The notes under the pieces were generated by a model, which saw only the letters and a program-made list of their open reading frames with translations, was not told the origin of the DNA and searched no databases. From contig CM035362.1 of NCBI GenBank assembly GCA_020137815.1, positions 4,216,001 to 4,280,000 of the forward strand: a stretch of 64,000 bases of DNA, given 5' to 3'. Made by a program: the position numbers and the translations under genes. The stretch is from Hormiphora californensis (Eukaryota > Animalia > Ctenophora). Below are positions 4,601 to 46,751 of the stretch, piece by piece; within the stretch, counting starts at the first letter, position 1, and each line of letters begins with the position of its first letter.

Positions 4601-7600
4601 GGGGTCCAATAGGACCTTGGTCACCCTCATCACCATCAGCACCATCCTCACCATCGGGAGGGGGTTCACGCGTGAGTCCATCCATATCCAGAATTCCAGG
4701 AAGTCCAGGAGCTCCATCAAGTCCATTGATACCAGGTGGGCCCATTTCTCCCTGGGCTCCCTTGGGGCCCATATCACCGACGGCTCCTTGGTCTCCGACA
4801 ATACCTTGATCTCCTTCGTCACCTACGTCACCTACGGGACCTTGGGGACCATTCATACCATTGATACCATCAAGACCGTCCACTCCTGGATCACCGACAG
4901 CTCCAGTTTCACCGACCTCGCCCTCAGGTCCGGCAGGTCCCTGAATGTGATGGATGGTGTGAGTAATAATTGTGTCATATTTCAACCCTAAACATCAATT
5001 TAATTGCCACATAGCTCTGTAACACCTACTTCAGCTCCATCAGCTCCATCAAGTCCAGGCAATCCATCATATCCATCGGCACCATCGGCACCAACGTCTC
5101 CGACGGGACCTTGGTTGCCATTGAGTCCATCAGCACCGGGCTCTCCGACGGGTCCTTGATCTCCAACTTCTCCCTAGATTAAGAAATGTCAATTCATGGA
5201 TGCACTGATAAATTAATGATTGGAGATTGCGGTGCAGCAATGTGTTGGTGACAATCAGGAACCGACCGAAACAAGCAAACAACCACCCATAACTCGTTAT
5301 TTAGGTCACGTGACTGGTTATCAGCCAATCAGGGACCAGTATTTCCTGATTCGGTCGGTTCCTGCGGTGCAGCAATGTGGTGGTGATAATTTAAAACTTT
5401 CTTACCTTCTGTCCTTCATCACCGACAACGACTTGTCCAATACTTCCGATGTCTCCAGAAAGTCCCTGGACTCCCTTGGGTCCTTGAGGTCCCTGTTCTC
5501 CCTTGGCTCCATCAAGTCCAGACGGTCCATCGGTTCCAGGTTCTCCCTCAGCTCCCTGAGCACCAATATCTCCAAGAGCTCCCTTGGCTCCTACGGGCCC
5601 TTGGTCTCCATCAACTCCATCAACTCCATCAAGACCAGGTGCGCCAGCTGCGCCTTCGTCACCGAGGGGTCCCTGATCTCCCTCAGGTCCTTCGTCTCCA
5701 ACCTCACCCTTAGCACCATCTATACCGTCATCTCCTGGGATTCCGACATCACCGACATCACCGACGGGACCCTGGTCACCGAGGGGACCTTGAATACCAT
5801 CAGCACCATCAAGACCATCAAGACCATCGTATCCATCAGCGCCAGGCTCACCAACAGGTCCGTCAGCTCCGACGGGTCCTTGGTCACCGACGGGTCCCTG
5901 GTCGCCAACTTCACCGACAGCTCCATCAGCGCCGGGTATCCCGTCAAATCCATCAGTACCGGGGATACCAGCTGCACCCTCGGCACCCATATCACCTTCA
6001 TCACCGGGAGGTCCTACAGTGTCATCACCGGTGGCTCCGATATCACCAACGGGTCCCACAGGTCCCTCGATACCAACCGGACCGACAACACCTTCAGGTC
6101 CTTCAGGTCCTTCGGGTCCTTGGGCTCCATCAAGGCCATCAGCTGCATCTTCTCCTGCATCTCCTGCATCTCCTGCAACCCCTTGGATTCCATCCACTCC
6201 ATCATCTCCCTGAGGGCCGGTAGCTCCTGTATCTCCAGTGGGACCATCAAGACCATCTTCTCCAACGTCTCCGACGGGACCTTCAGCTCCGATTTCACCC
6301 TTGGGTCCATCGGCTCCATCATCACCGGGAATTCCATCATAACCATCGTCACCGGGAATACCATCGAGTCCATCAGCACCATCCTCACCGGCTGGTCCCT
6401 GAGCACCCTCATCACCCATTGGTCCAACATCCCCAACTTCCCCAGTAGGACCCTGGTCACCCTCATCACCATCAATGCCATCAGCACCATCAATGCCAGG
6501 AATACCATCAAATCCTGCGTCTCCCTCTGCTCCCATAGGACCCATATCACCTTCTTCCCCAACGGCTCCGGTAGCACCATCGAAACCATCAGTACCAGGA
6601 GCTCCATCAAGACCATCAAGACCATCATCACCAAGTTCACCCTGGGGTCCTTCAGGTCCAACGTCACCGGGATCTCCCACGCCACCATCAGCTCCATCAG
6701 CTCCATCAGCTCCATCCGCACCATCGGCACCATCAGGTCCAACAGGACCGACTTCTCCTATGTCTCCAGTTGCACCATCAGGAGCATCGTCACCATGAGC
6801 ACCATCGAGGCCGGCTTCTCCCTTAGGTCCCTGAAGTCCCTCATCTCCCTCACCACCATCAACACCATCAACACCGTCAGCACCGTCAGCACCGTCAGCA
6901 CCATCAAGACCATCAAGACCATTAGAACCATCAGCACCAGGCTCTCCGGGGGCACCAACTTCACCAACTTCACCAACGAGTCCGTCAATTCCATTGATCC
7001 CGTCGACTCCGTCGATTCCAGCCTCTCCCTTCTCTCCGACTAGACCCTGGTCACCTGTCTCTCCATCAATACCATCAGCACCATCATCACCATCGAAACC
7101 GTTATAACCATCAGGTCCTGGTTCCCCTACTTCGCCGGTAGCTCCCTTGGCACCATCAAGACCCTGAAATGAAGTAACAAGTGAGTTAATTCAGTTGTTG
7201 TTAATTCAGTACTGTTAGCTGTTGGTATTTAACAACAATAAAATGACTAAACTTACATCGGCACCATCAGGACCGTCGGCACCATCAACACCGGGAATTC
7301 CGTCAGCACCGTCCATTCCAGCTTCTCCAACGGCTCCTTGGTCTCCAACGGGTCCCATTTCACCACCATCTCCTTCAGCACCGTCGACTCCCTGGACACC
7401 CTCAGCACCCTCATCTCCCTCGGGTCCGACAACATCGGCACCGTCAAGGCCATCAACACCATCAAGGCCATCAGCACCGGCGTCACCCTGGGGTCCCTGG
7501 AGTCCCTGGGGTCCAACAATATCATCTCCAGGCTCACCCTTAGATCCAGTAACTCCATCTAGTCCATCGAGACCATCATCACCTGAGAATAATAAATTAG

Positions 7601-10600
7601 TAATTAGTAAATTAGTAATTTAAAATGACTAGTCTTTGTCAGGTTTAGTAGTCCGTTCCAGCAGGAGAGTGCTCGATCTCGACAGGTGTCGGAGAGCTAG
7701 TTACACAAAGGAAAACTACTGTTTAGTTTGTCAGGTTTATACAAGAAACCGAGTTTTGGGTCCCAAAGTTAGTTTTGCATAAAAGCTAACAGAATGCATA
7801 TATTGTCTAGTTTTGAAACTCCAGCGCCTTTTCAGATACACCAGATGTCAGTTAAAAAAGGAAGTTATACCTACGGGTCCCTCAGGTCCCTCAGGTCCCA
7901 CAGGTCCTTCGTCTCCGGTAGGGCCATCTCCACCCTCAACTCCCATATCACCAAAATCACCCTCCTCTCCCTAGGCAGATAGATAAAGTTTAGATAGGAA
8001 GAAAGGACGGGAATTGAGAAAGTTGTGAGGAAACTATTATTGTTATTATAGTGTGCAATTATATCACTGTGGTTGATGATGGGGAATAGATCCTCCGGGA
8101 TAACTCGACAGAGAAATACACTAGTGTTTCAATTTGTAGTGTGCAATTATACCTTTTCTCCTTGGAATCCATCATCACCATCATCACCATCAAGACCATC
8201 GAAACCAGGTGCACCGGTATCGCCGGTTTCTCCCTGAGGCCCGACATCACCGACATCACCGACAGGACCCTCATCTCCAGGAACACCCTGGTCTCCTTTA
8301 ATAAAGTTTATGTAAGTTTTTCCCTTCTCTCCCTTCTGACCTTCACCACCTTCAAGACCATCAAGACCATCAGCTCCTGGAAAACCATCAAACCCAGCCA
8401 GTCCCTCCTCTCCAGGCGCTCCATCAAGTCCCTAAATATCGGGGGAAACGGATTAGTAATTTATAATTATAATTATAATTATAATTATTGTATTTACTAA
8501 TCGATTAGTTAGATAATTGATCATAGCACGGAGGCAGATTATAGTTGATACTGTAACTACTTACAAAGAACCGACCAACACAAGTAAACAATCAATCAGA
8601 ACTCATTATTTAGGTCACGTGAGTGGTTATCAGCCAATCAGGGACCAGTATTTCCTACTACTTACATCGATTCCAGGTACACCCTGGTATCCCTGAGGAC
8701 CCATTGGGCCCTCCTCTCCCTTGAGTCCTATAGGTCCCTCAGCTCCAATATCTCCATCTTCACCATCAATTCCGGGTATACCTTCGAATCCAACCGCTCC
8801 GGGCTCTCCTTGGTCTCCAGGGATTCCTGTGACACCGGTGTCTCCCTGCTCTCCCTCAGCACCGTCAGCACCATCTACACCGGGAACGCCATCAATGCCA
8901 ACACCGGCCTCACCAACGGGTCCAACATCACCCTCATCCCCAACGGGGCCATCAACACCATCATCGCCATTGATACCATCAATTCCGTCATCACCAGGAG
9001 CACCGACGTCGCCCTGGGGTCCCTCGGGTCCGATAGGTCCAACTTCGCCAGTCTCTCCCACGTCGCCATCAAGACCATCTTCACCATCGATACCATCAAA
9101 CCCGGGAACACCAGCCTCACCCTTGAGACCCTGAAGTCCGGGAGCACCATCTTGACCGTCGTAACCATCGAAACCAGGCTCTCCTTTTTGGCCGACAGAG
9201 GGGGGTCCTTCCTCCCCCTCTCCCCCGTCAATTCCGGGGAGTCCATCATCACCGGAAATACCCGGGGCTCCCTGAAAACAAAGATAAGTTACGCAGTTTT
9301 AATAATAATAATAATAATAATATCTAAACTTGCATCCTGCCCAGATCCCCCAGGGTTAGCATAGCATAGCTAGTGCTGCCACTGAGGGATAATCAGAGCA
9401 GTTTACTGACACACTGACACCAAAATTAGTCAAAACAGTTTTTATTAACCTGGGGTCCGACGTCTCCGAGGGGACCCTCAACACCTGTAAGACCGTCGGT
9501 TCCGTTACATCCGTCAACACCAGGAACTCCATCTAGTCCGTCCGCACCGTTAAGTCCGGGGGCACCCTTTTCTCCAGATTCACCCTCGACTCCCTTCTCT
9601 CCTCGGGGACCTCGGCTACCAGTGTTTCCGGGGGCTCCAGGATAACCGTAATCTCCCTCAAGACCAGTCTCACCCTTAACACCCTCCATTCCGTCGGGTC
9701 CTGGGAGCAGGGAAGGCTATAGTTATTTAGGAGAACAAACTCTCTAATTGGGACGATGGTATAAATGATTCGGGGGATAATAATGCATTTATAGGTATAA
9801 ATCAACTACCGTTGTTTTTAATTTGAATAACTCAACTATGATATTGATTATAACGGGACCAGAGTACAACGTTTAGAATCCTGAGAAGATCAAGAATAAA
9901 GATTCTGGTATTATTTGAAAGGGCTATAGTGAACAATACATACCTGGGTATCCCTCGGGACCAGTTGGTCCTTGAGACCCCTTGTCACCCGTCATTCCCT
10001 TTAAAAACTTGGCTTGCTGAAGGGAATATGGGGTGTGTGTTATTTGGAGGAAGAAGGAAGTATTAAACACACACGTCACACGCACATATTCCCAAAAACC
10101 CAAACAGCAAACAACGTACATCAAACGGGGCTAGAGAACTGTCAGAGCATTGGCCTGACCCTATTCTGTGGTCAGAGCAAATTGGCCTGACAGCTTGAGA
10201 AAGAGCCTTGAGTCACACCAGCTAGCAGGAACCGACCGAAACAAGTAAACAACCAATCAGAACTCATTATTTAGGTCACGTGACTGGTTATCAGCCAATC
10301 AGGGACCAGTATTTCCTGATTCGGTCGGTTCCTGCCAGCTAGTAAACACGTACAAGGGCTGTTGGCTACAAAAACAGCTATCTGTTTAAGCAACTAAAAA
10401 TTCCCTGTTAACAGCTCTGTTTTTGCAACTTTTCGTTTTCTGCAGATCTGCTCAGATCTGAGCTCAGAATTTTACCGGCTCTGAAAAGTTGCAAAAACTG
10501 AGCTGTTTTTTATGTGAGCAGTGGCTGTTAGTTGTACATCAACAGACCTCACGCGTTAACTAGGGCAGCATGTATATTCTTGAAAGGCTACACTGTCCCT

Positions 10601-11327
10601 GATCACAATCGCACTGCGGCAGCTGTGAAAACTCTGTCATGTATTGTCCATATATGGGCATATGACATCATAAAATAGCCATATATGGGCATATGACATC
10701 ATATGGTCTCGATTCATGCAGCCCCGTCACACACACCCTCACATGGTCACTATGGAGCTTCACAAAGACAAAATTGCGAGCTCACCTAGAACATGGCTTC
10801 TTTACTTGACCGCCTAGATTGGAAGTATATATCTTGTTTTGGCGCAAATAACCCTCTAGATACCATCAAATAACCATTAAATAACCCTCTAATAACCCGG
10901 CCCTCTAATAACCCGAATTATCGATTATTGTACGAACCAACGTGCCCACTTATCTGATAAATAGGTATTTTTTAATCTACCTAAATTACATAACCCCAAT
11001 ATCCTAACCCCAATGTATCCAACCGATATAGTGACCCAGTTATCCTTCACATATACACCCACTATATTAATATTAGTACTGCAAAATCGTTATTTCTCTT
11101 TAATTGAAACACCCACTGATTTGAAATTCATTTTATCTATAGAATATCCCGCCCACAAAGGTATAATTTGCTGATACCCAGCTACATCTCCTACAATCAC
11201 CCCTACATCCCGCACTTACCCTACGACAGCATGCCGCGGGGTCCGCCTCTGGATCTGCCTCGGGGTCCGCATCAGCCCTCACAGCGCATAGGATGGCCAG
11301 TCCACACAACACAATAGATAATCTCAT
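1665..11327 (-). CDS. COL4A-like: Type IV collagen alpha chain A (highly acidic), 16 coding exons, about 1889 aa
   Basis: Signal peptide [19 protein letters not shown]-terminal CC, 7S-like GCNGT motif, interrupted Gly-X-Y, two-C4 NC1 (RHSQT..CP..LWTGYS; QELG..GSCLE; SRC..C). Hand-read exons: 11327-11220, 10016-9944, 9700-9450, 9271-8666, 8431-8153, 7970-7871, 7582-7257, 7163-5406, 5173-5030, 4940-4500, 4327-4070, 3869-3369, 3149-2957, 2746-2548, 2436-2310, 1970-1665. All introns GT-AG and phase-consistent; total 5670 nt, stop TAG. Confidence 0.93.
2128..2306. repeat. 9-bp intronic minisatellite (GTACTCAAT) starting at a collagen A NC1 donor
   Basis: About 20 units. Confidence 0.9.
5256..5364. 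mobile_element. 109-bp hAT-like MITE, copy 2 (collagen A intron)
   Basis: Same TIRs and body; flanked by a 26-bp imperfect direct repeat. Confidence 0.85.
8564..8657. mobile_element. Degenerate/truncated copy of the 109-bp MITE next to a collagen A splice donor
   Basis: aaccgacc..caatcagaactcattatttaggtcacgtga..ccaatcagggaccagtatttcct. Confidence 0.75.
10226..10334. mobile_element. 109-bp hAT-like MITE, copy 4 (collagen A intron 1)
   Basis: Perfect TIRs; 8-bp TSD CCAGCTAG. Confidence 0.88.
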
Positions 11328-11367
11328 CTTCTCAGATGGTCCGAGATGTAATTTTGTGTTCCACGTT

Positions 11368-13217: not shown

Positions 13218-16200
13218 TTAAAGGGAGTTACGGGCGCATACAATGCACCTACTGACTCCCTGGTCTAGGATGTCATTGAGGCCGCTGTACACATTTCCCA
13301 TTCCCCACATGCCCGGTTGGTTGGTCTCCTGGTTCTGGGCGAGCCAGTAATCCAGGTTGTTGATGTAGTAGGAACAGGTTCCTCGTCCCAGACACTCAAT
13401 GAAGGTGGGCAGGAAGAAGTTCTCCAGACAGGATCCGGCACTGCTCAGATCTTGGCCACCTCCAGATGTAGAGGATGATGTGACCTGTAGGAGAGAGGGT
13501 GGATTAGAATTTCAGGATAGTGCAAATCCTTTGAGGTTTTGATTTTTCATGGTTTTTCGATAATAATTAACGTACCATGACGTAAGAGTAACCAGTCCAG
13601 ATTTCGCTAAAGTCAGTGGGGCAATCAGGGGCGACGGCCTTGAAGGAATGTCGGGCAATGATGTACTTGGTTCCCATGCACACTCGGCACCTGTTTGAAA
13701 TTGGAATTGGTTGGCGGGATGGGAAGGTGGGATCAACGTTATAGCTTGAGATATGTGGTAGATCAATGTAAGGAGTGTGAACAAGTCCGATCTAAATGTA
13801 AGGAGTGTGAACTAGTCTTATCTAAATGTAAGGATTGTGAACTAGTTTGTTCTGAATGTAAGGAGTGTGAACTAGTCTGATCTAAATGTAAGGAGTGTGA
13901 ACTAGTCCGATCTAAATGTAAGGAGTCTGATCTAAATGTAAGGAGTGTGAACTAGTCCGATCTAAATGTAAGGAGTGTGAACTGTCTGATCTAAATGTAA
14001 GGATTGTGAATTAGTCCGTTCTAAATGTAAGGAGTGTGAACTGTCTGATCTAAATGTAAGGAGTGTGAACTAATTTCATCAATTACCTGGAGATATGTGG
14101 CAGAATTTCATCAATGTTGTTCATGGGCTTGCTGGAGAAGTCAGCCTCCTGGTTGGTTCCCAGCCAGAAGCTCTTATCAGTCCTCACACCGTGTCGGCAA
14201 ACATCAGATGCGGAACACTGCATGAAGGGTAGAAGCTGGAAGTCCTCGAGACAAGAACCAGCATCACCAAGATCTTGAGAGAGTCCGTAGCCGTTACCCT
14301 CGAAGAATACCAAAGAGTAACCAGACCAGAGAGAGGTGAATTCAGCGGGGCAGTCGGGGGTACGGTCAGACTGGGAGTGTCGGGTGACAACATGAGTGTC
14401 ACAGTTACAGGGAGAGTAGTCATCAATGTTACATTTTCCATCGTTTCCTTTGTCTCCCTTCTCACCGCTAATTCCCTTGTCTCCCTTTTGGCCCTTGATC
14501 CCAGCGAGACCTTTCTGGCCGGAGGCTCCCTTAACTCCCTTGGCTCCATCGTTACCATCTCTACCAGGTGCACCTCGTTCTCCCTTGGGTCCCATCTCTC
14601 CCTTAGCTCCATCAATTCCGGGAAGGCCATCAGATCCAGGAGCACCATCATTTCCAGGAGCACCATCATTTCCAGGAGCACCATTTCGACCATCAGCACC
14701 ATCAGCACCCTTTTCACCGTCAAATCCAGGTAGACCGGCTTCTCCCTTCTCTCCCTTCTCTCCCCAGTTGTTTTCGGTGACAACTTCAGTGATGATTTCC
14801 GTCCAGATATCCCAAGCGGGGTCCTCAGGAGTGACGGGGGGATCAACCAATTTACCATCAACACCGGGGATTCCAACAAGACCTTCCTCTCCCTTTTGTC
14901 CCTGGGGACCTCGTTCTCCCTTGGCTCCATCGTTACCATTTCGACCGGGTTCTCCCTGAGGTCCATCATTTCCGGGGGCTCCGGGTTCTCCTTGAGGTCC
15001 AACGGGGCCAGTATCTCCCTTAGCTCCATCATTTCCGGGGGCTCCGGGGGCTCCAGGGGCCCCATCATCTCCTGGGTTTCCGTCCCTTCCATCGTTACCA
15101 GGTTCTCCCTTAGCTCCATCGAGTCCAGGAAGTCCGTTGGCTCCTGGAGCACCCTGAATACCAACACCAGGTTCTCCTTGAGCACCTTCAGCACCGGGGG
15201 AACCATCACGACCATCAGCACCGGGGGCACCATCAGCACCATCAGCACCGGGTTCTCCCTTGTTTCCAACTGCTCCAGTCATACCCCTAGGTCCAGTATC
15301 TCCAGCTTCTCCCTTGTCTCCCTGGGGTCCAGTATCTCCCTGGGGTCCAGGTTCTCCCTGGGGTCCAGTATCTCCCTTTTCTCCATCATAACCAGGTTGT
15401 CCCTGAAATAAAGCGGGGGGTTATTATCTACAATTCACCCAAGGTAATTTTACAAAATCTCAAATAAAAAGAAGACTTTAGAAGGCTTGTGGTATAATAC
15501 CGGTTCATAAGGACAGTCCACTTGAGTGACGATGTAATCTGCTCCTTTTTCTCCCTGTTCACCATCAAGTCCTCCAGGTCCAGCAAGGCCAGGTTCTCCC
15601 ACGGGTCCTATAATAATAATAATAATAATATTATTAACTATGTTTGTACTCCGCCCATGATATCCGACAGGGACAGAACAGTAGAACTGTTGCTGTCACT
15701 GAAGGATGATCTGAACGGTTAACGTACTTGAAAAAGACCTGCCGACTAATCCTATCTTATTGATTGGTCAATTGATTTAAATACTTTTGATTAATTTTTT
15801 GACAATGTGTTGAAGGAGTAGTAGAGATAAAGATTAAAAAAATCAAAACTTACCCTGAGGTCCAGTATCTCCCTGAGGTCCGGTGTCTCCCTGGGGTCCA
15901 GCATCTCCCTTGGGTCCCTGAGGTCCCTGAGCTCCTCGTTCTCCTACAGTTCCGGGAAGTCCATCACCACCAGGGGCTCCCATATCTCCCTTGGCACCAG
16001 TTGGGCCTTGGTCTCCTTGGGGTCCCATAGGACCATCAGCACCATCAGCACCGTCATCACCGGGAGCACCATCTCGACCGTCATTACCAGGTGCACCTGT
16101 ATCACCTTGGGGACCATCATCGCCATTAGCACCAGGAGAACCGGTAGCACCTCGAGGTCCAGTATCTCCCTTCTCTCCCTGGGGTCCAACTTGTCCTAGG

Positions 16201-16962
16201 CCAGGCTCTCCCTTAGGTCCAGCAGGACCTTCATCTCCAGGAACTCCTGCAATTCCTTCGTCTCCGGGAACTCCCTTGAGACCAGGTCCTCCGGGAATTC
16301 CGGGGGAACCAGTGTCTCCCTGGGGTCCAGCGGGGCCAGTATCTCCTGTTGGAAATTGGATTTCGTCGGTCAGTCATCATGGAAAATGGATGTATGATAT
16401 TTTGGGACGACATTGAGCTATGAAATGTGAGAGTTTGGAACTTACCCTTAGCACCAGTATCTCCAACGGGACCACGGGCACCGTCAGCACCGTCAGCACC
16501 AGGTTCTCCGTCAGCACCAGCAGGTCCAGTATCTCCCTGAGCGCCGGTTCTGCCCTGGGGTCCAGCATCTCCTTTCTCGCCATCCAAACCATCCATACCA
16601 GGTTCACCTAAAGTACAAAATATAGCAACCAAGATTTGATATCGGCGTTATACCTTTTTGTCAACTGCTGATTTTTCCTTCCAGTCGAAGAACTCGTCAT
16701 TTTACTCACCCTGAGGTCCTGCGGGTCCAGTATCTCCCTGAGGTCCTTGTTCTCCCTTAGGTCCTTCTTCTCCATCGTCTCCGTCGGCTCCAGGGTATCC
16801 GTCAGCACCAGCAGGTCCGGTGTCTCCCTTAGCTCCCTGAGGTCCGCTGGGTCCGGTATCTCCCTGAGGACCAGCGGCACCAGGTTCTCCATCAACGCCA
16901 TCGGCTCCATCGGCTCCATCAAGACCATCAGCACCGGGTGATCCGGGAGCTCCTCGAGATCC
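13218..16962 (-). CDS. COL4A-like: Collagen IV gene B 3' module B2 (helix plus NC1 split by two introns); isoform about 1886 aa
   Basis: Exons 16962-16710, 16607-16446, 16345-15854, 15607-15501, 15402-14087, 13690-13576, 13484-13218 (2712 nt). Starts ttccag|GGA TCT CGA in phase 0. NC1 ends ..[13 protein letters not shown]. No start or signal exon recognisable in the about 560 bp after the B1 stop. Confidence 0.88.
13765..14072. repeat. About 29-bp intronic minisatellite in the B2 NC1 intron
   Basis: tctaaatgtaaggagtgtgaactagtc repeated about 11 times. Confidence 0.9.
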
Positions 16963-17529
16963 CTGGAAACATCTTTAGTCAAAATCACAGAAGCACTTTC
17001 AGCTCTCACTTTATCTCACTTTTCACTCACCAATTAAATTTAGGATTTACTAATTTTAGAATTCATAATGATTTCAATTTTCCCAACCCCAACTGCCGAG
17101 ACACAGAGATTACGAAATGAGTTGTAAAACCGAATGGGGTGTTCATAATACATTATGATAAAAAAGAGAGAGGAAGTAAAAGTATAACTTCCAAAACGTA
17201 CTCAAATTCTCAATAACATTCCACAAATAAATAATCATCACTTTCTCTCGAGCTCTATCCAGAATTGACATCAACAATATAATTCAAATATACATTTTCC
17301 CAGTACCCAACTCCCCGCGGTACCAGCGACTATTTACATCATGAGTAAACTGTTAAATATCTACATGTCCCTTATTTACAGAGTCCTAAAACCTCTACAG
17401 TCCTCCTGTAAATTAGTGATGAAGTGTCCTAAGAGAACCTCTTTTTTGGCGGGGATGTTTCCCTAAAAGAACCTCTTTTTGGCGGGAATATTTCCCTAAA
17501 AGAACCTTCTCTTTGGCGGGAATATTTCC

Positions 17530-20304
17530 CTAAAAGAACCTCTTTTTGGCGGGAAGTTTCTTCCCGCACACCGAGCACCTCGAAAGACCCTCATTCTGGA
17601 TCTGGTCGAGGCCGTTGTAGATGTTGCCCATGCCGAACATTCCTGGAACGGGATCTTTCTTGGCTGCCAGCCAGTAATCCAGGTTGTTAACATAGTATGA
17701 GCACATACCCCGACCTACACACTCGATGAACGAGGGAAGGAAGAAGTTCTCCATGCAGGATCCGATTCCACCTAGGTCCTGGCCACCACCAACACCACCA
17801 CCACCACTCACCATGAGATACGAGTACCCCGCCCAGAGCCGCTCGAAGTTCTGGGGACAGTCGGGGATGTCATTGCTGTAGCTGTGTCTAGCCATCATGA
17901 ACTGGACACCACTACACACCACACACCGGGAGATGTAGGGGAGAATATCGTCCTCGGTTTTCAGGGGTGCCATGGCCTTGATATCATCTTGTCCATTGGT
18001 AGTCAACCAGAAGGATTTATCCGTCCGCTGTCCATGCTGACAGACGTTCCTAGATCCACACTGTAGGAATGGCATGACCTGGAATTCCTCCATACAGCTG
18101 CCACTGCCGCCCAAATCTTGAGCGAGTCCATACCCCTGGGACTCAAAGTAGACGAGGGAGTACCCGCTGTACAGCTCTACCCAGTGAGGGGGACAGCTGG
18201 GCACTCGGTCGGTCTGGGAGTGTCGGGCGATAACGTGGGTGTCACAACTGCACGGCCAATCAGCCGTGTTTCCACAGTCACCACACTTTCCGTCATCCCC
18301 GGGTTTTCCGTTTTGGCCGGAGTCTCCCTTTTGGCCCTTGATACCCTGATTTCCTGAGGTTCCAGGAACACCCTTCATGCCGGGAAGTCCAGTTAGACCG
18401 GGGTTACCCTTGGGTCCGATTGGTCCTGCGGGACCCCGTTCTCCCTTCTGTCCTCCTTCACCTGCTCCCCTTCCAATATCATCAGTGGGATCCTCGTCTC
18501 CTTCATTTCCAGCCTGAGAGAGTATTAATTAGTTAATTAGCATGCATGTAGTTAGTTAATTAGTTTTAATTAATCATTAGTCATGTTTGTTGAATATATT
18601 TCTCCTTACATTTCCATCACATGGACAGACACCAGGCTCTCCCTTCTCTCCTAGATCTCCTTTGGGACCATATTCGCCCTTGTACCCCATTGGACCTCGA
18701 TCACCAGTGTCGCCCTTCACACCCTGTTTGGTTATTGGGGTTTAAACATGGAGAAATACACATTATGGAAGGAGGATATGAGAAAACTGGAGAGAGGGGT
18801 AGTGAGAGAGAGAGAGAGAGAGTGTGAGAGAGAAAGAGAGTGAGGGAGAGATAGATAGAGATAGAGAAAACAGAGTTCTAAAATCACTTACCTTTCCTCC
18901 ACTAACACCGGGCATTCCAGCAGGTCCTTGAGATCCAGGGAGTCCAGGGTTTCCAGAGGGTCCGACCCGTCCATCCTGTCCGTTCCTACCAGCCTCACCC
19001 TTGGGTCCAGCCTCACCAGCACGGCCCTTGTTACCAGGGGTTCCAGGAAGACCTTGTCGTCCAACACCAGGCTCACCAGCTTCTCCCTTCTCTCCGTCCC
19101 GACCTGCCGTTCCTCTCTCTCCCTTGCCTCCAGCCAGTCCAGGAAGTCCTGCCTTTCCTTCGGGTCCTTCTGGTCCCATGTCACCCTGGGGTCCCTGGGG
19201 TCCCCGGGCACCATCTTGTCCGGCTTGTCCAGCTTCTCCAGTGGTACCTCGGATACCAGGTCGACCTGACTCACCGGGCTCACCCTTGATTCCCTGGGCT
19301 CCAGGGGGTCCAATGACACCAGCATCACTTGACCCACCGGGCGATCCTCTCTCTCCCTTGGTTCCCTTCAGTCCTTGGGTTCCGGGGAATCCCGGGACTC
19401 CAGCGTCTCCCTTAGGTCCCATTTTACCAGGCTGTCCTACTCCGGTTGCTCCTTCAGGTCCAGGGCTACCAGCAGCACCACTTGCTCCCCTAGGCCCGGG
19501 TTGTCCAGGTTGTCCATCTTTTCCGTCCTTTCCATCAGCTCCGGGATCACCAGTGTATCCTCGTGGTCCCTGACTTCCACTGACTCCCTTTGCTCCGGGG
19601 ACACCTGGGAAACCAGGATCACCTTTCATACCAAGATCACCAGGGTTGCCCTTGGCACCCGGGACTCCGGGGTTGCCATCGCGACCATTAGCACCAGCAG
19701 CTCCCTCTCCGCCAGGCACACCAGGTTGTCCTGGGGGTCCAGTAATACTTTGTCCGGGTTGTCCGGGATCTCCGTCATTTCCTCGTCCACCCTTCTGTCC
19801 TGGCATGCCCGACTGTCCAGGAACTCCCTTTTGTCCGGGGACACCGGGTATACCCTGAGATCCAACACTACCCGGTTCTCCGTCCGTACCGGGTTCACCG
19901 GGTGTTCCGTTTTGCCCGTTAAGCCCATTTGCGCCCCTTGGTCCAGATTCTCCCTTTTGTCCCTGGGGTCCAGTTCGTCCCGGCGTTCCTGTGTTTCCCT
20001 TAGCTCCGGCGGCTCCGTCTTGACCATCAAGTCCAGGTAGACCAGGCTTTCCGGGCTCACCACCATAACCCTTAGCTCCGGGAATTCCAGTCAAACCGGG
20101 TTCTCCCTTAGTTCCGGGAAGTCCATTTCGTCCGGGGACACCCTGGATACCTGGACCACCCTGAGATCCAGTATCACCTTTGACACCCGCCGCGCCATCT
20201 CTTCCATCCTTTCCGGGTTCTCCCTTGGTTCCTTGTTCGCCGGGGGGTCCGGCAATGAACACCTCATTGCCTTTGTAGCTACTTCCAGCAGTTCCTTTGG
20301 GGCC
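17530..20304 (-). CDS. COL4A-like: Collagen IV gene B 3' module B1 (Lys/Arg/Gln-rich helix plus intronless NC1); isoform about 1819 aa
   Basis: Exons 20304-18892, 18723-18610, 18513-17530 (2511 nt). Starts ccccag|GGC CCC AAA in phase 0. Full two-C4 NC1 ending ..SRCSVCGKKLPAKKRFF*. No signal peptide of its own. Confidence 0.88.
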
Positions 20305-20401
20305 CTGGGGCAGGAGAGGTGAGGGGGTGCAGCAGGAACACTCGGGGGCTGTCAATTTAAATCCCAACACTTCACAAACACAAAACGCAAAAACAAAACA
20401 T

Positions 20402-20405
<4 letters not shown>

Positions 20406-20491
<86 letters not shown>

Positions 20492-20536
20492 AAGAGAGAG
20501 AACGAGAGAGAAGAGAGAAGAGAGAGGAGAGAGAGA

Positions 20537-20628
<92 letters not shown>

Positions 20629-20634
20629 GAGAGA
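20406..20634. repeat. (GA)n microsatellite in the intron between the shared half and module B1
   Basis: Direct reading. Confidence 0.95.
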
Positions 20635-20969
20635 AAACAGCAAACCATTTCACATAATTTCAGCCGACGTCGGTGGTATCAATTGGCGTATCAGAGAGCA
20701 ACGGAAACAAAACTCTGCTACAATTCACAAGTGTGCTTATTCCAGACGTATCAGCTTGGTTCTATTCGGTCTGAGTAATAACATGAGGGTGAAGTTGAAC
20801 GGCAGCGAAACTTATCAACTAATTTCGGTTTCGTTACTACCAAATTTCAGTTTTAAGTTAAACCTATCATTTTGGTAATAGTTCAATTCTCTCACACACA
20901 AACACACACGCACACACTTTCTCACTCCCACAATTACACACTGATGAATTACAGCATCTTTCAACTTAC

Positions 20970-23900
20970 AATGTCTCCTTTTTCTCCCTGAATGCTAGCT
21001 CCAGGTTCTCCCTTGGCGCCGGTAGCACCCTGGGGTCCCTCAGGTCCAGTGGGTCCCTCAGGTCCCTGTTGTCCAGGAGGTCCCTGTTCTCCCTCAGCTC
21101 CATCAGCTCCATCGTTACCATCAGCACCAGGCTCTCCCTTGACACCTGAGAGAGAGAAGAAAAGCTATAATATATTGAAACTTAATTCAAGGTCTGGGAT
21201 TTTAACAATGTAGAATTTAATTATAATTAATTAATTTAATTATCAATTTAATGATAAAGTCAAGATATTTACCCTTGACTCCAGAAACTCCAGGTAGACC
21301 GGGGGCTCCAGGTCGGCCAGTAGCGCCACCATCTCCAGTATCTCCCTTAGCTCCATCAAATCCGGGTTCTCCCTTGGCTCCCTGAGGTCCTCGGTTTCCA
21401 GGCTCGCCAGGTTGGCCATCAACTCCGGGGGTTCCGTCGGTTCCGGGGGTTCCATTGGCTCCATCCTGTCCGGGTTGTCCATCATTTCCATTATCTCCAG
21501 CGGGTCCGGTGTTTCCGGTAGGTCCCATTGGGCCAGCGTCACCCTTCTCTCCCTCGGGTCCAGTGGCACCCTTTAGTCCGGGGTTTCCAGGAAGACCATC
21601 AGCTCCATTAGATCCGGGAGTTCCTGCGGGTCCAGTAGGTCCCTGAGGTCCAGTAGCTCCCTTATCTCCTTGCGCACCGGGACGACCGTCAGCACCATCA
21701 GCACCATCATTTCCAGGGGTACCATCAGCACCCATATCTCCCTTAGCTCCAGTAGGTCCCATAGGTCCAGTAGATCCCTTGGCTCCTTGATCTCCATCAG
21801 CACCATCAGCACCATCGACACCATCAGCACCATCATAACCAGGGGCTCCCATAGGTCCAGCTTCTCCCTTTCCTCCCTTTGCTCCAGGAACTCCAGGAAG
21901 TCCAGGGGCACCGTCATCTCCGGGTTCGCCTTGAGGTCCCATAGGACCAGTGGATCCCTTAGCTCCATCAGCACCATCAGCACCGGGAGCGCCGTCAGCA
22001 CCATCAAATCCATCGGCACCAGGGGCACCATCAGCGCCATCAGCACCCATATCTCCCTTGGGTCCAGCAGGACCTCGGGCGCCCTTAGCTCCAGAAGTTC
22101 CGGGAAGTCCATCAAGTCCAGGCTCTCCAGTAGCTCCGGTATCTCCCTGAGGTCCAGTATCTCCCTTGGCTCCATCAGCACCATCGGCACCGGGTAGTCC
22201 ATCAAGACCATCCTTTCCGTCGGCTCCTTGAGGACCCCTGTCGCCAGTAGCTCCATCAGCTCCGGGGTTTCCGTCACTTCCGGGGGCACCATCAGATCCA
22301 TCAGATCCATCACTTCCGGGGGTACCAGCGGCACCAGTGTCACCTTTGGGTCCAGTGGGTCCCTGGGGTCCAGCGTCTCCCTTAACTCCCTTGAATCCAG
22401 AGGGACCGGGAAGTCCAGGAATACCCTGATCTCCCTTGATGGAATCACCATCAGCACCGGGATATCCATCAGCACCGGGTTGTCCATCAGCACCAGCATC
22501 TCCCTTCTCTCCAGTGGCTCCAGTGATCGATCTTCCTGGTTCTCCCGTGGGTCCCTGGTCACCAGGGGCACCATCAGCACCATCATTACCGGGCTCTCCT
22601 GTAAGTAGTGAAATGGTTAATAAATCAAACAGTTTATGGGGTAAAATAGGGATTTATTCAAAAATATATAGAAAACAAACCTTGGGGTCCAGTAGGTCCC
22701 ATGGGTCCAGTGTCTCCCTGAGCTCCCTTAGCTCCGGTGATACCAGGTAGACCGGGGGCACCGCCATCTCCCTTCTCTCCCTGAGGTCCGTCAGCTCCGG
22801 GAACTCCATTAGCTCCGTCAGCTCCATCAGCTCCAACATCCCCAGTGTTTCCTTTGGGTCCAGTAGGTCCAGTGTCTCCCTTGGCACCTAAAATCATCGT
22901 TGTGTCATAATTTCAAAACAATTGTCATCTAGGGAGGTAGCCCGGTAATATCTATCAAAAAATAAATATGATAATTATGTTAATTATGTAATTTCTTACC
23001 GGTAGGTCCTTGTCGTCCGGGTTCTCCAGTCTCTCCCTTGACCTCAGCGGTTAAGTCATCACCGGGCTCTCCCTTCGGACCCGCCAACCCAGGCTCCCCG
23101 TTAACTCCATCATTACCATTCCTTCCATCTCGTCCAGGTGCACCCATATCTCCAGTGGCGCCCTTAGCTCCGGGGGTTCCAGGCAGACCAACATCTCCCT
23201 GAGGTCCGGTAGGTCCACGTTCTCCTTCGGGTCCCTCAGGTCCGACAGGTCCGGCATCTCCAGGAACACCATCAGCTCCATCAGCTCCGGGAGAACCCAT
23301 ATCTCCAGTAACTCCCTTCAGTCCAGCGGTTCCAGGCATACCCATTTCTCCCTTAGCTCCCTTGGCACCATCAGCACCATCAACACCATCATCTCCGGGG
23401 ATTCCAATACCGGGGGCACCCTGATCTCCTCGCTCTCCCTTGGCTCCCTGATCTCCATCGAGTCCGGGGAATCCATCGGTTCCGGGTACACCTGGTGCTC
23501 CATCGGGTCCGGGTTCTCCAGTTCGTCCAGTGGGTCCCTGGGGTCCGACGTCACCGGTGGCTCCCTTAGCTCCGGGGATTCCGGGAAGACCGTTAGCTCC
23601 GTCAGCACCATCAGCACCATCATCACCTTGGGCACCCTGGGAAAATGTTCAACTTTAGACACACGCGGAACACAAAGTTGGTAATTACAAAATGTCAGTT
23701 ACAATAACTGAAATTTTGCAATAACTGACCGTTATATTGTCAATTATAGGTGGACTTGGAACACACATACCTTAGCGCCAGCAGGTCCAGGTAGACCATC
23801 AGCACCGGGAATACCAGGCTCTCCCTTGGATCCATCATCAACAATTCCGGGGGGACCTTGGTCTCCCTTGGCTCCGGGACCTCCGGGGACTCCATCTTGT

Positions 23901-24719
23901 CCGGGTTCTCCCTGGGGTCCAGTTCGACCGGGCTCTCCCTTCATTCCATCAACACCATCGGTACCGTTGCAACCATCAATACCGGGTAGACCGTCAGCGC
24001 CATGTCGGCCGTCTACTCCGTTAATTCCGGGAGGTCCAGGGGGTCCGGTGGAACCGGGCTCTCCTCGATATCCCTTCACTCCAGCAAGACCGGGCATACC
24101 AATGTCTCCCTTGGCTCCGGGCGGGCCGGGGTCTCCTTGGATACCGGGGGAACCAGATTCTCCCTGAGGTCCTTGGGGTCCCTGAGGTCCCTGGACTCCA
24201 GGAGGTCCTTGTCGTCCTGAAATTTGGGAATAATTTAGAAATTTCCGTAAACAACAGAAAGCCTGACACGGAATAACTAAGGGTACCAAATCAATAGCCA
24301 TAGTTACCAATTCAGTTACCATGGTTACCAATTCAGTTACCATGGTTACCATGGTTACCAATAACATACCTTTCACGAAGTTGGTAGGTCGTGAGCAACA
24401 TCCAGCGGGATCAGCCTCGGGATCAGCTTCGGCATCAGCATCAGCCTCGGCGTCGGCCCTGGAAACGGTGTAAATTTTTAATTGGGGATATTTTAAGAAA
24501 ACAACGATTTAATTTTTTAGTAGCAGTGCTAGTTTAGAACTGCTACTAAATTTTAGTACTATTAAAATTCAATCAAGCTTAATTTGGATTAATCCTGTTG
24601 AAATTTAAGCTCGATCCTAACATTTAATTACCTAATTAATTAATTAATTACCTAATTACGGTGGCACAGAAAGTCAGGTAAAGGAGCACAACCCCTAAAA
24701 ATGTTCTGGAACGAGTCAT
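20970..24719 (-). CDS. COL4A-like: Type IV collagen gene B, shared 5' half (signal peptide, propeptide, 7S, first part of helix; 983 aa)
   Basis: [51 protein letters not shown] motif, Gly-X-Y. Exons 24719-24652, 24458-24370, 24216-23771, 23636-23000, 22887-22681, 22598-21273, 21145-20970 (2949 nt; ends GGA GAC ATT|gtaagt, phase 0). Confidence 0.9.
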
Positions 24720-25685: not shown

Positions 25686-25814
25686 TGCAGGCTTACAACA
25701 ACACTTTGCCCCATTGGGCGAGCAGTAAAAGCCACGTGACTAAAATCCGGAGGACTTGTTGCAGTAGCTGCCCCTTGGAGCGCTGTGCAGAACCTCAATG
25801 GAAGAAGCCTCACC

Positions 25815-25889
<75 letters not shown>

Positions 25890-25959
25890 TCTCTTCTCTC
25901 CTTCTCTCCCTCTTCTTCTCTTCTCTCTCTCTCCTCCTCCTGCAGGTTTTGACTCCACA

Positions 25960-26089
25960 ATCCTCCTTTTTTAAAAAAAAATTTTTTTTTTTCCCCCCCC
26001 CCGGGGGGGGGGGGGGAAAGGGGGGGGGGGGGGCCCCCCCCCTTTTTTCCCCCCCGGGGGGGTTTTTTTTTTTGGGGGGCCGGGGAAAT

Positions 26090-26126
<37 letters not shown>

Positions 26127-26762
26127 TTTGGGGCCGAAAACCCTTTTTTTTTGGGGCCGGGGGGGGTTTTTTTCCCCCCCTTCCCCTTTCTTTTTTTCCT
26201 TTTCTTTTCCCCCCCCCTTTCCCCCTTTTTTTCCCTTTTTTCCCCCTTTTTTTTTTTCCCAAAATTTTAAAAAAAAAAAAAAAAGGGAAAAAAAAAACCC
26301 CCAAAAAAAAGGGGGTTTTTTAAAAAAAAATTTTTTCCCCCCTTTTTTTTTTTTCCCCCCAAAACCCCCCCTTTTTTTTTTTTTTTTCCTCTTTTTTTTT
26401 CTCTTTTCCCCCCCCCCCCTTTTTTTTCCCTTTTTTTTTCCCCCCCCCCCGGGGAGGGGGGGGGGGGGCCCCCCGGGGGGGGGGGGCCCCCCCTTTTTTT
26501 CCCCCCTTTTTTTTCCCCCTTTTCCCTTTCCCCCCTTTTTTTTTTTTCCCCTTTCCCTTTCCTCCCCCTTTTTTTTCCTTTTTTTTTTTTTTTTTTTTCC
26601 CCCCCTTTTTTTTTTTTGGGGGGAAAAAAAGGGGGGGGGCCTTTTTTTTTTTTTGGGGGGGGTTTTTTAAAAAAAAAAGGGGGGGGGGGGGCCCCCCCCT
26701 TTTTTTTTCCCCCCTTTGGGGGGTTTTTTTTTTTTGTTTTTTTTTAAAAAAAAAAAATTTAA

Positions 26763-26793
<31 letters not shown>

Positions 26794-27072
26794 CCCAACC
26801 CCTTAAAAAAGGGGGGGGGGGCCCCCCCCCCCCGGGGGGGGGGGAAAAAAATTTTTCCCCTTTTTTTTTAAAGGGAGGGGGTTTTTAATAAAAAAGAGGG
26901 AGAATAGAGAGGGGGGGGAAAAAAAAAGAGGGAAAAAAAAAAAGGGGGGGGAAAAAAAAAAACCCCCCTTTTTTGGGGGAAAAAGGGGGGGGGGAAAAAA
27001 AGGGGGGAAAAAAAATTTTTTTTTTTGGGGGGGGGGAAAAAAAAGGGGGGAAAAAATTTTAAAAAGGGGGGT

Positions 27073-27104
<32 letters not shown>

Positions 27105-27283
27105 AAGGGAAAAAAACCCCTTAAAGGGGTTTCCCCCCCCCCGGGGGGGGCCCCCCCCCGGGGTTTCCCCCCCGGGGTTTTTTTTCCCCCCCGGGTTCCC
27201 CCCTTTTCCCAAATCCATCAAACGAGGGGAGTGTCGCACGAGGCCCCAAAAAAATTTTAAAGGGGGGAAAAAAAAGGGGGGTT

Positions 27284-27316
<33 letters not shown>

Positions 27317-30300
27317 AAGGGAAAAAAGGGAAAAAAAAAGGGGAGAAAAGGGGGGGGGAAAAAGCCCAAAAAAAAAAAAAAAAAAAAAAAGAAAAAAAGA
27401 AAGGAGAGAGAGAAGAGAGAGAAGAGGGGGGAAAGAAAAAAAAAAAAAAAAGGGGGAAAAAAGGGAAAGAAAGAGAAAGAAAAAAATTTTTTTTTTAAAA
27501 AAAAAAAAAAAATTTTTTCCCCCCGAGAAAAACCCGAAATTTGGGGAAATTTGGGGGGAAAAAAGAGAAAAAGTGACTGAAAAGGCAGCTTATAGTTACC
27601 CGGGGGGGGGAAAAAGGGAGAAAGGGAGAAAAAAAGGGGGGAAAAAGGGGGAAAAAAAGGGGGAAGCCGGGGAATTCAAATTTAAAAAAAAAAAAAAATT
27701 TTTTTAAAAAAGGGGGGGTTTTTGGGGGGGGGAAAAATTTTAAATCATTGGGAAATTTTTGAAAATTCCCAAAAAAGAAGAAAGGGTCCAGGTCGTATGC
27801 GGTGTAATAAAGCGGGGAAAAAGGTTGACAGCGAGAGGCGATAAACTGTGCAGCAAGGGGCTTTTTTCTGGGGGAAAAGATAGAAAAAGGGAGAGAGAAG
27901 GAAAAAGAGGGAGAGAGAGAGAGGGGAGAGGGGAGAGGGTAAGAGGGAGGAAGAAAAAGGGGGGGACAATTGGGTTTTTTCAAAAGGTTTTGGGACCCTA
28001 CACACACGGGATTTTTAAATTTTGGGGAAAAAAGGTTTAAAAAACATTTGATTCCCAAACATCGCCCGGGCGAAGTCCCTACATCCCGGTTTTAAAGGGG
28101 CCTAATCCCCGGGATCGACCTCTCTCTCTCCCCTTTTCTCTCTCTCTCTCTCTTCCCCTTCCTTTTCTCCCCCCTCCCTCTCTCTCTCTCTCTAATTTTT
28201 CCCCTCTCTCTTTCCCCTCTCTCTCTCTCTCTCTCTGTGTGTCTCTCTCCCCTCTCTCTCCCCCCCCCTCTCCCCCTCTTTTTTCTTCCCCTATCTCTTC
28301 CCCCCCCTCTCTCTCCTCTCTCAAAAACAAGACCACAAACCATAAAACCGACGCAAAAGGAGGGGAAAAAAAAGAAAAGTTCAGGGGGCAAATTTTTTCC
28401 CTTATTCAATTTTTTTTGCATTTGACTCCTTCTTCTCTTTTCCTTCTCTAAACTTTTAAAACGTTTTTTCCCCTCTATTCCCCTATTCCCCTCTTTTTTG
28501 GACAAAACTCCAAAAACAGCTCTGCACGCGTTTGTGAAATGAACTCCAGTGTGAAAATGCGACAAAAATTAAAGAGAACGAGACAGAAAGATAGCGGGGC
28601 CGGATCTAGGTTTGGGCAAACCTGTAAAAATCCGGGGCCCCGGTTTACCGGGCCCCGGCCCGGGGCATCCCCGGGAAATCGGGAAACCCCACTGGGGTAA
28701 AAAAATTGAAAGAGGACACCATAAAACAGCTCACATACAAGATCAATCAAGGGGATCTTCTTGGCCGTACAAGAATAACAAATCAGGGATGATTTTTCTA
28801 TTCTTTGTCTGAATTACCTTTTTTCCTAAAACAAACCCCCAAGGGCCCTAAATGAATTTTGGGCACGACCCAAAAAAGGGTATTAGATTAGAAAACCGCG
28901 GAATTTTTAACAGGCGGGTTACATCATGTTTCTGACTTGATAGACGGAAGCTACAAAGTTTTCATATATTAGTCGGGGCGAATCTTAATTTTTTGACAAA
29001 ACTATTGGGGGAAAAGCAAAATTTTTGGGGTTTTAACCCCCTATTTTGAAACCCCTAAAAACATCCCCCTCCTGGGAAGCTTGCAAAAGTGAAGAAAAAG
29101 CCCAAATCGGCCAAGCCCTTTTACCCGTATTTTTTAGCCTGTAGCCAAAAAAATTAAAAACCTCTTAGAATAGGAGTAGAGACAAAATTGGGGGGCACTA
29201 AATTTTCAGCGCCCCGTTAGTGGGGGGAGGTGCTGAAAATTTAATCTATCTCAAACTGGTTAATTTGATAATTGGGGTAATTAGGTTTGCGCAAAAACCC
29301 TTTTTTGGGTTATGGCTTAAACCCCTTAGGAAAGGGTTTTGAGAAATTTTTTTTCGGGCGGCATTTTTTTTTGGGGAATGCCCGTTAGGGGGTCGCTCGG
29401 ACTTTTAAAGCTCTATCTCCAACCGTTTTAAAGGGGTTATGGCTTAAACGGAAAAATCGGGTTTTTTCCTTTTTTTTCCCGCTCATTTTGAGCATCGATT
29501 AAGCCCAATCGGGCTAACTTTTTGGAGATGAGTTTAAATTCCGACGCGCCCCCCCTATTTTGGCTATTGCCTAAAAAATGGCGCCCTTAAAAAGTCTTAA
29601 ACCATTCCTTGGCTATAGCCATATAGCCAAAAAACGGTTAGCCAAACCTAATTTTCAATTATCTAATTAACCAGATAATAAGCTTAATTCCAGCACCCCC
29701 CCATAATCGAGGGCGCTGATCACTTTGGGCCCTCAGATTTGTCTCTAATCCATTCTAAAGCTTTATTTTTTTGGCTACAGGCTAAAATAAGGAAAAAAGG
29801 GCGTGGCCGATTTGGACATTTTTTTCCCTTTTTGCGAGTTTTCCCTAGGGCGGGATCGTGTTCAGCGGGAAAAATAGGGGGGTTAAAACCAATTTGCCTT
29901 TTCCCCCAAATATTTGGGTCAACCCCCTTTTTTTAAGAGATCGCCCCGACTATATATTCAATATGACACTTGCAGGGTGATAAATTTAGGGGAATTAGGG
30001 GGGCAGCGGACAAAAAGGGGGGGGGGGGGTAAAAAGCCAACAGTTAAAAAGCGGGGGATTTTGCTAAAGGGGAAAAAGCCCCGGTTCTCATTCGGGGGCC
30101 TCTATCCCCCCCCCCCTATAAAACCCCTCTCTGAACCTCTATCCCCTCTCTCCCTATTTAAAGATCAAAACCTCCCTTCCCCCCGGGTTATTTTTCCCTT
30201 TGCTTTAGAAGGGGGAACAAATTCTTTTCGTTTTTTGCAGGTTTGAAAAAGGGAAAAAAACAAGGGGGGGAGTAAAAGGGAGAGAAAAAAAAAGAAGAAT

Positions 30301-46691: not shown

Positions 46692-46751
<60 letters not shown>

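Follow-up and report, generated by a model that had tools for sequence, protein, structure and literature searches.

Collagen IV chain diversity is explained by gene duplication, and to our knowledge each chain comes, together with the NC1 domain that selects its partners, from its own gene in every animal studied. Genes that join one constant part to a choice of further parts are familiar elsewhere. In calcitonin/CGRP, common 5' exons are followed by a proximal terminal set with its own 3' end and by a distal set that is reached by skipping, the choice being a competition between splicing and polyadenylation, while in the protocadherin and UGT1A loci a common block is combined with one out of several homologous tandem blocks. 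Here we describe a collagen IV gene of the ctenophore Hormiphora californensis, termed gene B, on the minus strand of a 64,000-nucleotide (nt) stretch of DNA (GenBank assembly GCA_020137815.1, contig CM035362.1, positions 4,216,001 to 4,280,000; "the window", with positions counted from its first letter). Gene B has one shared 5' half (24719-20970), followed by two complete modules, B1 and B2, each encoding a collagenous helix and an NC1 domain. Judging from its structure and from related genes, we consider it probable that this is one gene with alternative 3' terminal modules and that both routes are used in vivo.

Among collagen IV genes, the nearest described case is C. elegans let-2, which encodes alpha2(IV) and has mutually exclusive exons 9 and 10 (PMC2119826). 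Both let-2 and gene B would yield two chains through alternative homologous coding segments, but let-2 swaps one short internal helix exon and keeps its NC1 and 3' end, whereas the unit exchanged in gene B would be about half of the protein, including NC1, stop codon and 3' end. Compared with calcitonin/CGRP, the tails of gene B are homologous multi-exon modules of 836 and 903 amino acids (aa) that include the domain by which the chains of a trimeric matrix protein are selected, and use of the distal tail is a prediction. The protocadherin and UGT1A loci have variable 5' first exons with their own promoters and a constant 3' block; in gene B, by contrast, the 5' part is constant and the 3' part variable. 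The H. californensis genome itself contains hundreds of nested intronic genes, and spliced leaders are found on at least 56% of its mRNAs (PMC8527503). Like those nested genes, B1 is a large coding unit within a same-strand intron; unlike them, it lacks both a start codon and a signal peptide of its own and is cis-spliced to the host exon in a contig from a related lineage (L004, below), and on these grounds we rejected B1 as a nested intronic gene.

Within the family, the Mnemiopsis genes ML034334a, ML034336a, ML18197a and ML18198a and an H. californensis paralog on contig C9 (itself called C9 below) resemble gene B in membership, in the exon sizes around the branch point, in the NC2 domain and in a Cys loop before NC1. 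In this group a 176-nt exon is directly followed by the 253-nt-type exon and each gene has one NC1, whereas gene B carries a second helix and NC1 module in that very intron. Alternative terminal modules are well known in general and are undescribed for collagen IV within the literature searched, where we found no equivalent, in agreement with an earlier reading of the window made from its letters only (the sequence-only reading). A paper on ctenophore collagen IV contains no word starting with "splic" (PMC5395295), and alternative splicing goes unmentioned in a later survey of how COL4 genes are arranged.

Architecture of gene B

We reconstructed the exons of gene B by combining open frames and Gly-X-Y runs with frame-preserving GT-AG sites. 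All modelled introns are bounded by canonical GT-AG, and the shared half, B1 and B2 form open frames of 983, 836 and 903 aa. The shared half comprises seven exons (2949 nt, 983 aa) beginning with the ATG at 24719, and encodes a signal peptide, a stretch of Asp/Ala/Pro dipeptides with a CC motif, 7S and a long acidic helix. It ends at a phase-0 donor at 20970 (GDI; ATT/gtaagt). The two downstream acceptors, 20304 for B1 (ccccag/GGC CCC AAA) and 16962 for B2 (ttccag/GGA TCT CGA), are also phase 0, and each opens with a complete Gly codon. The layout is that of alternative 3' terminal modules, with one 5' exon set and two downstream sets that are both in frame and have their own stops, and the predicted chains are 1819 aa for the shared half plus B1 and 1886 aa for the shared half plus B2. 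Only two signal-peptide/7S starts occur in the cluster, that of gene B at 24719 and that of the neighbouring gene A near 11.33 kb.

The sequence-only reading had placed the donor and the two acceptors at these positions, in phase 0 and with Gly first, and all of this was confirmed in the sequence. Our exon model also reproduced its lengths of 983, 1819 and 1886 aa. Its count of three complete NC1 domains behind only two starts agrees with Pfam C4 matches in B1, B2 and gene A, and its spacer of about 560 bp between the modules, said to lack AATAAA and a recognisable start exon, measures 567 nt and contains neither. The features of gene B are as follows:

24652-24719, minus strand: shared exon 1, with the ATG, the signal peptide and a phase-2 donor (from sequence and translation, open 983-aa frame)
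24370-24458, minus strand: shared exon 2, 89 nt, Asp/Ala/Pro dipeptide stretch and then the CC motif; same peptide in C9
23771-24216, minus strand: shared exon 3, 446 nt, where the Gly-X-Y helix begins; 7S-type region with Cys
23000-23636, minus strand: shared exon 4, 637 nt, equal in size in C9 and in exon 5 of Mnemiopsis ML034336a
22681-22887, minus strand: shared exon 5, 207 nt, equal in size in C9 and in Mnemiopsis ML034334a and ML034336a
21273-22598, minus strand: shared exon 6, 1326 nt, spliced to exon 7 in L004
20970-21145, minus strand: shared exon 7, 176 nt, at which the gene branches, with phase-0 donor gtaagt; single copy in the assembly
20305-20969, minus strand: intron from the shared donor to the B1 acceptor, 665 nt, with a long (CT)n polypyrimidine tract just upstream of that acceptor; absent from L004
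18892-20304, minus strand: B1 exon 1, 1413 nt, 471 aa, starting GPKGTAGSSYKGNEVFIAGPPG; its first 60 codons stand directly after shared exon 7 in L004
18610-18723, minus strand: B1 exon 2, 114 nt, ending GVCPCDGN
17530-18513, minus strand: B1 exon 3, with an acidic non-collagenous stretch, a short helix and a Cys loop ahead of the full NC1 of two C4 repeats, the tail PAKKRFF and the stop
16963-17529, minus strand: spacer between the B1 stop and the B2 acceptor, 567 nt, presumed B1 3' untranslated region and poly(A) region; at the same time the 3' end of the long B2 intron
16710-16962, minus strand: B2 exon 1, 253 nt, phase-0 acceptor; a 253-nt exon also follows the 176-nt exon in C9, ML034334a and ML034336a
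16446-16607, minus strand: B2 exon 2, 162 nt, equal in size in C9 and Mnemiopsis
15854-16345, minus strand: B2 exon 3, 492 nt, equal in size in C9
15501-15607, minus strand: B2 exon 4, 107 nt, donor picked by homology to the 110-nt C9 exon; the least certain boundary of the model
14087-15402, minus strand: B2 exon 5, 1316 nt, helix, NC2 domain, Cys loop and first C4 repeat; equal in size in C9
13576-13690, minus strand: B2 exon 6, 115 nt, where the second C4 repeat begins
13218-13484, minus strand: B2 exon 7, 264 coding nt and the stop codon (267 nt in all), completing NC1; stop at 13220-13218

In the whole assembly, shared exon 3 has only one further close copy, in C9 (87%), and a 176-nt exon is kept at the branch-point position in C9 and the four Mnemiopsis genes. 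The intron at 24459-24651 splits the signal peptide from the dipeptide/CC stretch, both of which lie in one exon of C9 (6217612-6217756). The CT-dinucleotide tract directly upstream of the B1 acceptor (about 20400-20650, ~250 nt) is the longest in the window, where CT microsatellites are frequent (25 tracts of at least 16 nt).

B1 consists of three exons (20304-18892, 18723-18610 and 18513-17533) that encode 836 aa, with the stop at 17532-17530. Its NC1 matches Pfam C4 (PF01413) in two repeats with 221.9 bits and is preceded by an acidic, Cys-containing stretch (GVCPCDGNAGNEGDEDPTDDIGRGA), shorter than the one in B2, and a Cys loop (GKCGDCGNTADWPCSC). This NC1 type is single-copy in the genome, its nearest relatives there being C9 and B2 (56-62% identical). 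It is 81% identical to that of P0001/P0391 from another species, two proteins encoded on 17-36 kb contigs, and the tails read PAKKRFF and PAKKRFL, respectively. As read from the sequence, B1 has no in-frame start of its own: it opens with Gly codons at the acceptor, and its first ATG is out of frame. A pseudogene status of B1 was rejected, as it contains no stops and its NC1 is 81% identical to the ortholog in the other species. Across the B1 stop runs a 34-nt unit present in 3.8 copies (17428-17555), each of which repeats the last coding bases and TAG (AAGAGGTTCTTTTAGGG), so that the PAKKRFF tail and its stop are followed by two to three near-copies of the same in the 3' untranslated region.

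The spacer at 16963-17529 contains no canonical AATAAA and no convincing exon with an ATG and a signal peptide. AATAAA is also absent downstream of the B2 stop, and its absence after B1 is therefore uninformative either way; variants of the poly(A) signal near the B1 end are AATAAG at 17376 and AGTAAA at 17051. B2 comprises seven exons and 903 aa (16962-13221), with the stop at 13220-13218. The first C4 repeat of its NC1 scores 99.6 bits against PF01413 and the second lies in later exons, and the module carries both an NC2-type non-collagenous stretch (GKLVDPP...TENNW) and a Cys loop.

These features place gene B in the collagen IV family. Its NC1 domains are built of two C4 repeats with conserved cysteines (15 Cys each in B1, B2 and C9, at corresponding positions), and the gene encodes an interrupted Gly-X-Y helix, a signal peptide, a CC motif and, in exon 3, Cys residues in a 7S-type region. 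Ctenophore collagen IV is characterised by an NC2 domain of ~38-44 residues in the helix and a Cys loop of 11-13 residues before NC1 (Fidler et al. 2017, PMC5395295), and an NC2-type stretch in the helix and a Cys loop before NC1 are present here as well. A profile search of the genome (110.7 Mb, 45 contigs) found C4 domains at at least 10 loci, in agreement with the large collagen IV repertoires described for ctenophores (PMC5395295).

In global alignment B1 and B2 are 49% identical and homologous from end to end. Their interruption landmarks coincide (~187-191, ~326-339 and GVG(R/I)QG at ~416-421), and the non-collagenous stretch, the Cys loop and NC1 align as well. Since the modules are homologous with matching landmarks, the start of B1 corresponds to the position at which the 253-nt exon starts. 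The two helices differ strongly in net charge (about -4 in B1 and -72 in B2, with -84 in the shared half). The NC1 types of B1 and B2 are 56-59% identical; being 41-44% apart and each conserved across species, they represent two old lineages.

Splice joins and maintenance of the two modules

For the join between the shared half and B1, we scanned metagenome contigs of the Joint Genome Institute with a wobble-degenerate, exon-only pattern for the last ten codons of exon 7. The scan gave one contig, L004 (Ga0247589_1016205, 1117 nt), which on its minus strand reads without introns from the end of exon 6 through all of exon 7 (VKGEPG...GASIQGDKGDI) into the first 60 codons of B1 (GPKGTSGSSYKGNEVFIAGPPG); the 127-nt and 665-nt introns are missing from it. 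L004 is collinear with our model over 372 codons at 90.9% nucleotide identity, with a nonsynonymous divergence (dN) of 0.041 and a synonymous divergence (dS) of 0.274, and is far nearer to gene B than to C9 (70%). The heterozygosity of H. californensis is 2-3% (PMC8527503). Because the divergence is far above this level, we take L004 as the orthologous gene of a related lineage. From L004 it follows that in that lineage B1 is cis-spliced to shared exon 7, and that the arrangement predates the split of the two lineages.

The join between the shared half and B2 is reflected in related genes. The C9 paralog (loci L001-L003) repeats the series of Gly-X-Y runs of the shared half plus B2, with exon sizes of 637, 207, 1326 and 176 nt and then 253, 162, 492, 110 (107 in B2), 1316, 115 and 264 nt. 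At its branch point, GASVKGEKGES/gtgagt is followed by an intron of only 133 bp and by tttag/GPRGSQGEPGADG. Mnemiopsis ML034334a and ML034336a have the exon series 176, 253 and 162 nt, and ML18198a and ML18197a the series 176, 256 or 259, and 165 nt (PMC5395295, supplementary file 1). The Mnemiopsis tables also list exons of 637 and 207 nt, as well as a last exon of 267 nt in ML034334a and ML18198a (PMC5395295). Being common to C9 and the Mnemiopsis genes, the join from the 176-nt to the 253-nt exon is ancient and has been kept in distantly related ctenophores. In gene B, B1 sits inside the corresponding intron, which is 4007 nt long here. On the evidence of exon structure, the predicted join from the shared half to B2 is the conserved ancestral exon join of the gene family.

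Several further searches around these joins were negative or unspecific. Comparison of the 133-bp intron of C9 with the flanks of the B1 insertion gave homology scores at the level of shuffled sequence. Protein searches with B1 exon 1, the L004-derived end of the shared half and B2 exon 1 returned generic collagen-like matches only, with a tool that is flooded by collagen words and whose length window excludes full-length chains. The public sequencing runs that contained words from the window were marine metatranscriptomes only, with 7-16% of the sampled words. Between B2 (13221-13484) and C9 (C9:6225379-6225642), the last exons differ by one amino acid in 87 codons, with a dS of 0.15, while other parts of the gene have dS values of ~0.4-1.8; this looks like gene conversion between chromosomes, limited to the NC1 end.

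Coding divergence was used to assess maintenance. Between B2 and the 3' half of C9, dN is 0.202 and dS 1.07 (ratio 0.19), and between the shared half and the 5' half of C9, dN is 0.190 and dS 0.755 (ratio 0.25). For the NC1 of B2 against that of C9, the ratio falls to 0.03-0.15. Compared with the outgroup proteins P0002/P0393, the B2 NC1 is 78.0/79.3% identical and the C9 NC1 78.0/78.4%. Furthermore, a stop would result from 4.3% of the point changes in B2, so that about 16 stops would be expected under neutrality over half of a dS of 0.27, and none is observed. This count assumes that B2 was already downstream of B1 when the L004 lineage split off, which is parsimonious because the B/C9 duplication is older (dS ~0.75-1.07). 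The absence of stops, the ratio of 0.19 and an NC1 no more diverged from the outgroups than that of C9 led us to reject B2 as a partial-duplicate pseudogene. Together with the conservation of the B1 NC1 in another species, these comparisons show both modules to be intact and under selective maintenance.

Proposed routes and rival explanations

In the proposed mechanism, route 1 would splice the donor at 20970 to the nearby strong acceptor at 20304 and end the transcript after B1, giving the 1819-aa chain, whose C-terminal helix is near-neutral and whose NC1 is of the B1 type. In route 2, transcription would proceed past the end of B1 and the whole of B1 would be removed within the 4007-nt intron (20970 to 16962), giving the 1886-aa chain, whose helix is acidic and whose NC1 is of the B2 type. 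B1 would likely be the default, as its acceptor is the first to be reached and lies behind the very long CT tract. Use of B2 would require that both the B1 acceptor and the B1 3'-end signals are bypassed, and the CT tract might, speculatively, serve as a platform for a polypyrimidine-tract repressor. We infer that the join to B2 is probably used in this animal. The two routes may be mutually exclusive and set by competition between splicing and polyadenylation, and the resulting chains may differ in partner selection through NC1.

Several observations weigh against the use of both modules. The polypyrimidine tract of the B1 acceptor is far stronger than that of B2 and B1 comes first, so B2 needs an active bypass, and an intron of 4 kb is far longer than the introns of 80-250 nt elsewhere in the gene. 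The only join seen in RNA is that of the shared half to B1, in L004, and this transcript belongs to a related lineage and not to the present genome. A protein search with B2 exon 1 found nothing near-identical among 5.8 billion proteins. Finally, the selection argument spans all the time since the B/C9 duplication, so a very recent silencing of B2 is possible. The position and strength of the B1 acceptor, the B1-only join in RNA and the lack of a B2-specific fragment in the protein database would all fit a gene in which only B1 is used and B2 is a stranded former 3' half, silenced once B1 had come into the intron. We consider this unlikely, given that B2 retains seven exons and 903 codons with neither stop nor frameshift and with canonical splice sites, that its dN/dS is low overall and lower still in NC1, that its NC1 has diverged from the outgroups no further than that of C9, and that the B1 join was already present in the lineage at a dS of 0.27, with the expected stops absent from B2 since.

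B2 might instead be a separate unit that makes a short chain without the 7S half, either from its own start in the 567-nt spacer or from a spliced leader joined at 16962. Trans-splicing of spliced leaders and nested or adjacent genes are common in H. californensis (PMC8527503), and the spacer contains one ATG frame of 40 codons (17271-17152) that is partly hydrophobic and ends at a weak phase-0 GT. The donor of this frame is poor (gtatta), however, and it has no typical signal-peptide layout and no 7S. A leader at 16962 would leave no in-frame ATG before exon 2, with several out-of-frame ATGs earlier, and the conservation of the 176/253 join in C9 and four Mnemiopsis genes also makes a separate unit improbable. 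Another arrangement would treat the helical exons of B1 as cassettes that can also precede B2, giving longer chains that would accompany or replace the simple B2 form. Both internal donors of B1, 18892 and 18610, lie in phase 0 and in frame with GSRGAPG at 16962, and 18892 also keeps the Gly-X-Y register, but we found no evidence for such joins. As B1 and B2 are homologous over their full length, a chain with the B1 helix plus B2 would duplicate half a helix and exceed any paralog by ~470 aa, which makes this arrangement quite improbable. We regard as highly improbable an assembly artefact in which two tandem full genes lost or collapsed the second 5' half between B1 and B2, even though two such halves would be similar repeats. 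Besides the diverged C9 gene, no second exon 3 or exon 7 occurs in the 45 contigs, and the published assembly was built from deep long-read and Hi-C data (PMC8527503). A collapse of this kind would not normally remove the second front half cleanly and yet keep the context of a phase-0 acceptor, and the B1 side is confirmed by the spliced contig L004.

The sequence-only reading had itself raised an independent start for B2 and a missing third 5' half as outcomes that would speak against two chains from one gene. We found no credible start in the spacer and no further 5' half elsewhere in the assembly, where exon 3 and exon 7 occur once each, plus C9. Of its interpretation, the part that stands is that one 5' half and two 3' modules are real, and the comparative evidence strongly favours the use of both; its proposal that network composition would be set post-transcriptionally is one we keep in the conditional. 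A single gene with alternative 3' terminal modules, both in use, is our preferred reading. The fuller claim, that both routes are used and regulated, so that one locus would make two alpha chains of two old NC1 lineages with a common 7S and N-terminal helix and with different C-terminal helices and NC1 domains, is advanced tentatively, as a possibility a little short of an even chance.

Neighbouring loci and implications

Gene A (3087-11330), whose NC1 also matches Pfam C4, has intron positions unlike those of gene B and C9, mostly in phase 0, and an even more acidic helix; its last NC1 exon resembles the B2 type (72% to P0002) more than it does the B1 type. Directly upstream of gene B (25800-28100) and at 46330-46880, the window is of very low complexity, with G, A, C and T runs that give poly-Gly, poly-Lys, poly-Pro and poly-Phe frames on both strands. 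At 38619-44349, an EGF-like start is followed by a giant open frame (1836 aa) of Gly/Ser-rich tandem repeats (GSSGSSGLD and other units). Outside the window, a second collagen IV cluster lies at C13:3120001-3180000 (L005-L010). It comprises four apparently ordinary collagen IV-like genes, two on each strand with the middle pair head to head, and several kb of helix-coding sequence lie upstream of each NC1. A search of this interval for a second double-module gene, by Gly-X-Y runs and C4 matches, found none.

Full-length cDNA and RNA-seq data exist for H. californensis (PMC8527503). A gene able to exchange half of its helix along with NC1 would offer another way of reaching collagen IV chain diversity, in a lineage near the base of the animals whose collagen IV repertoire was already known to be unusually large and variable. 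Gene B would also amount to a natural experiment, in which the same 7S end and N-terminal helix are combined with two NC1 types and two classes of helix charge. If the proposed reading is true, the composition of trimers and networks could shift, or even a heterotrimer could arise, from one gene through the choice of splice and polyadenylation site.

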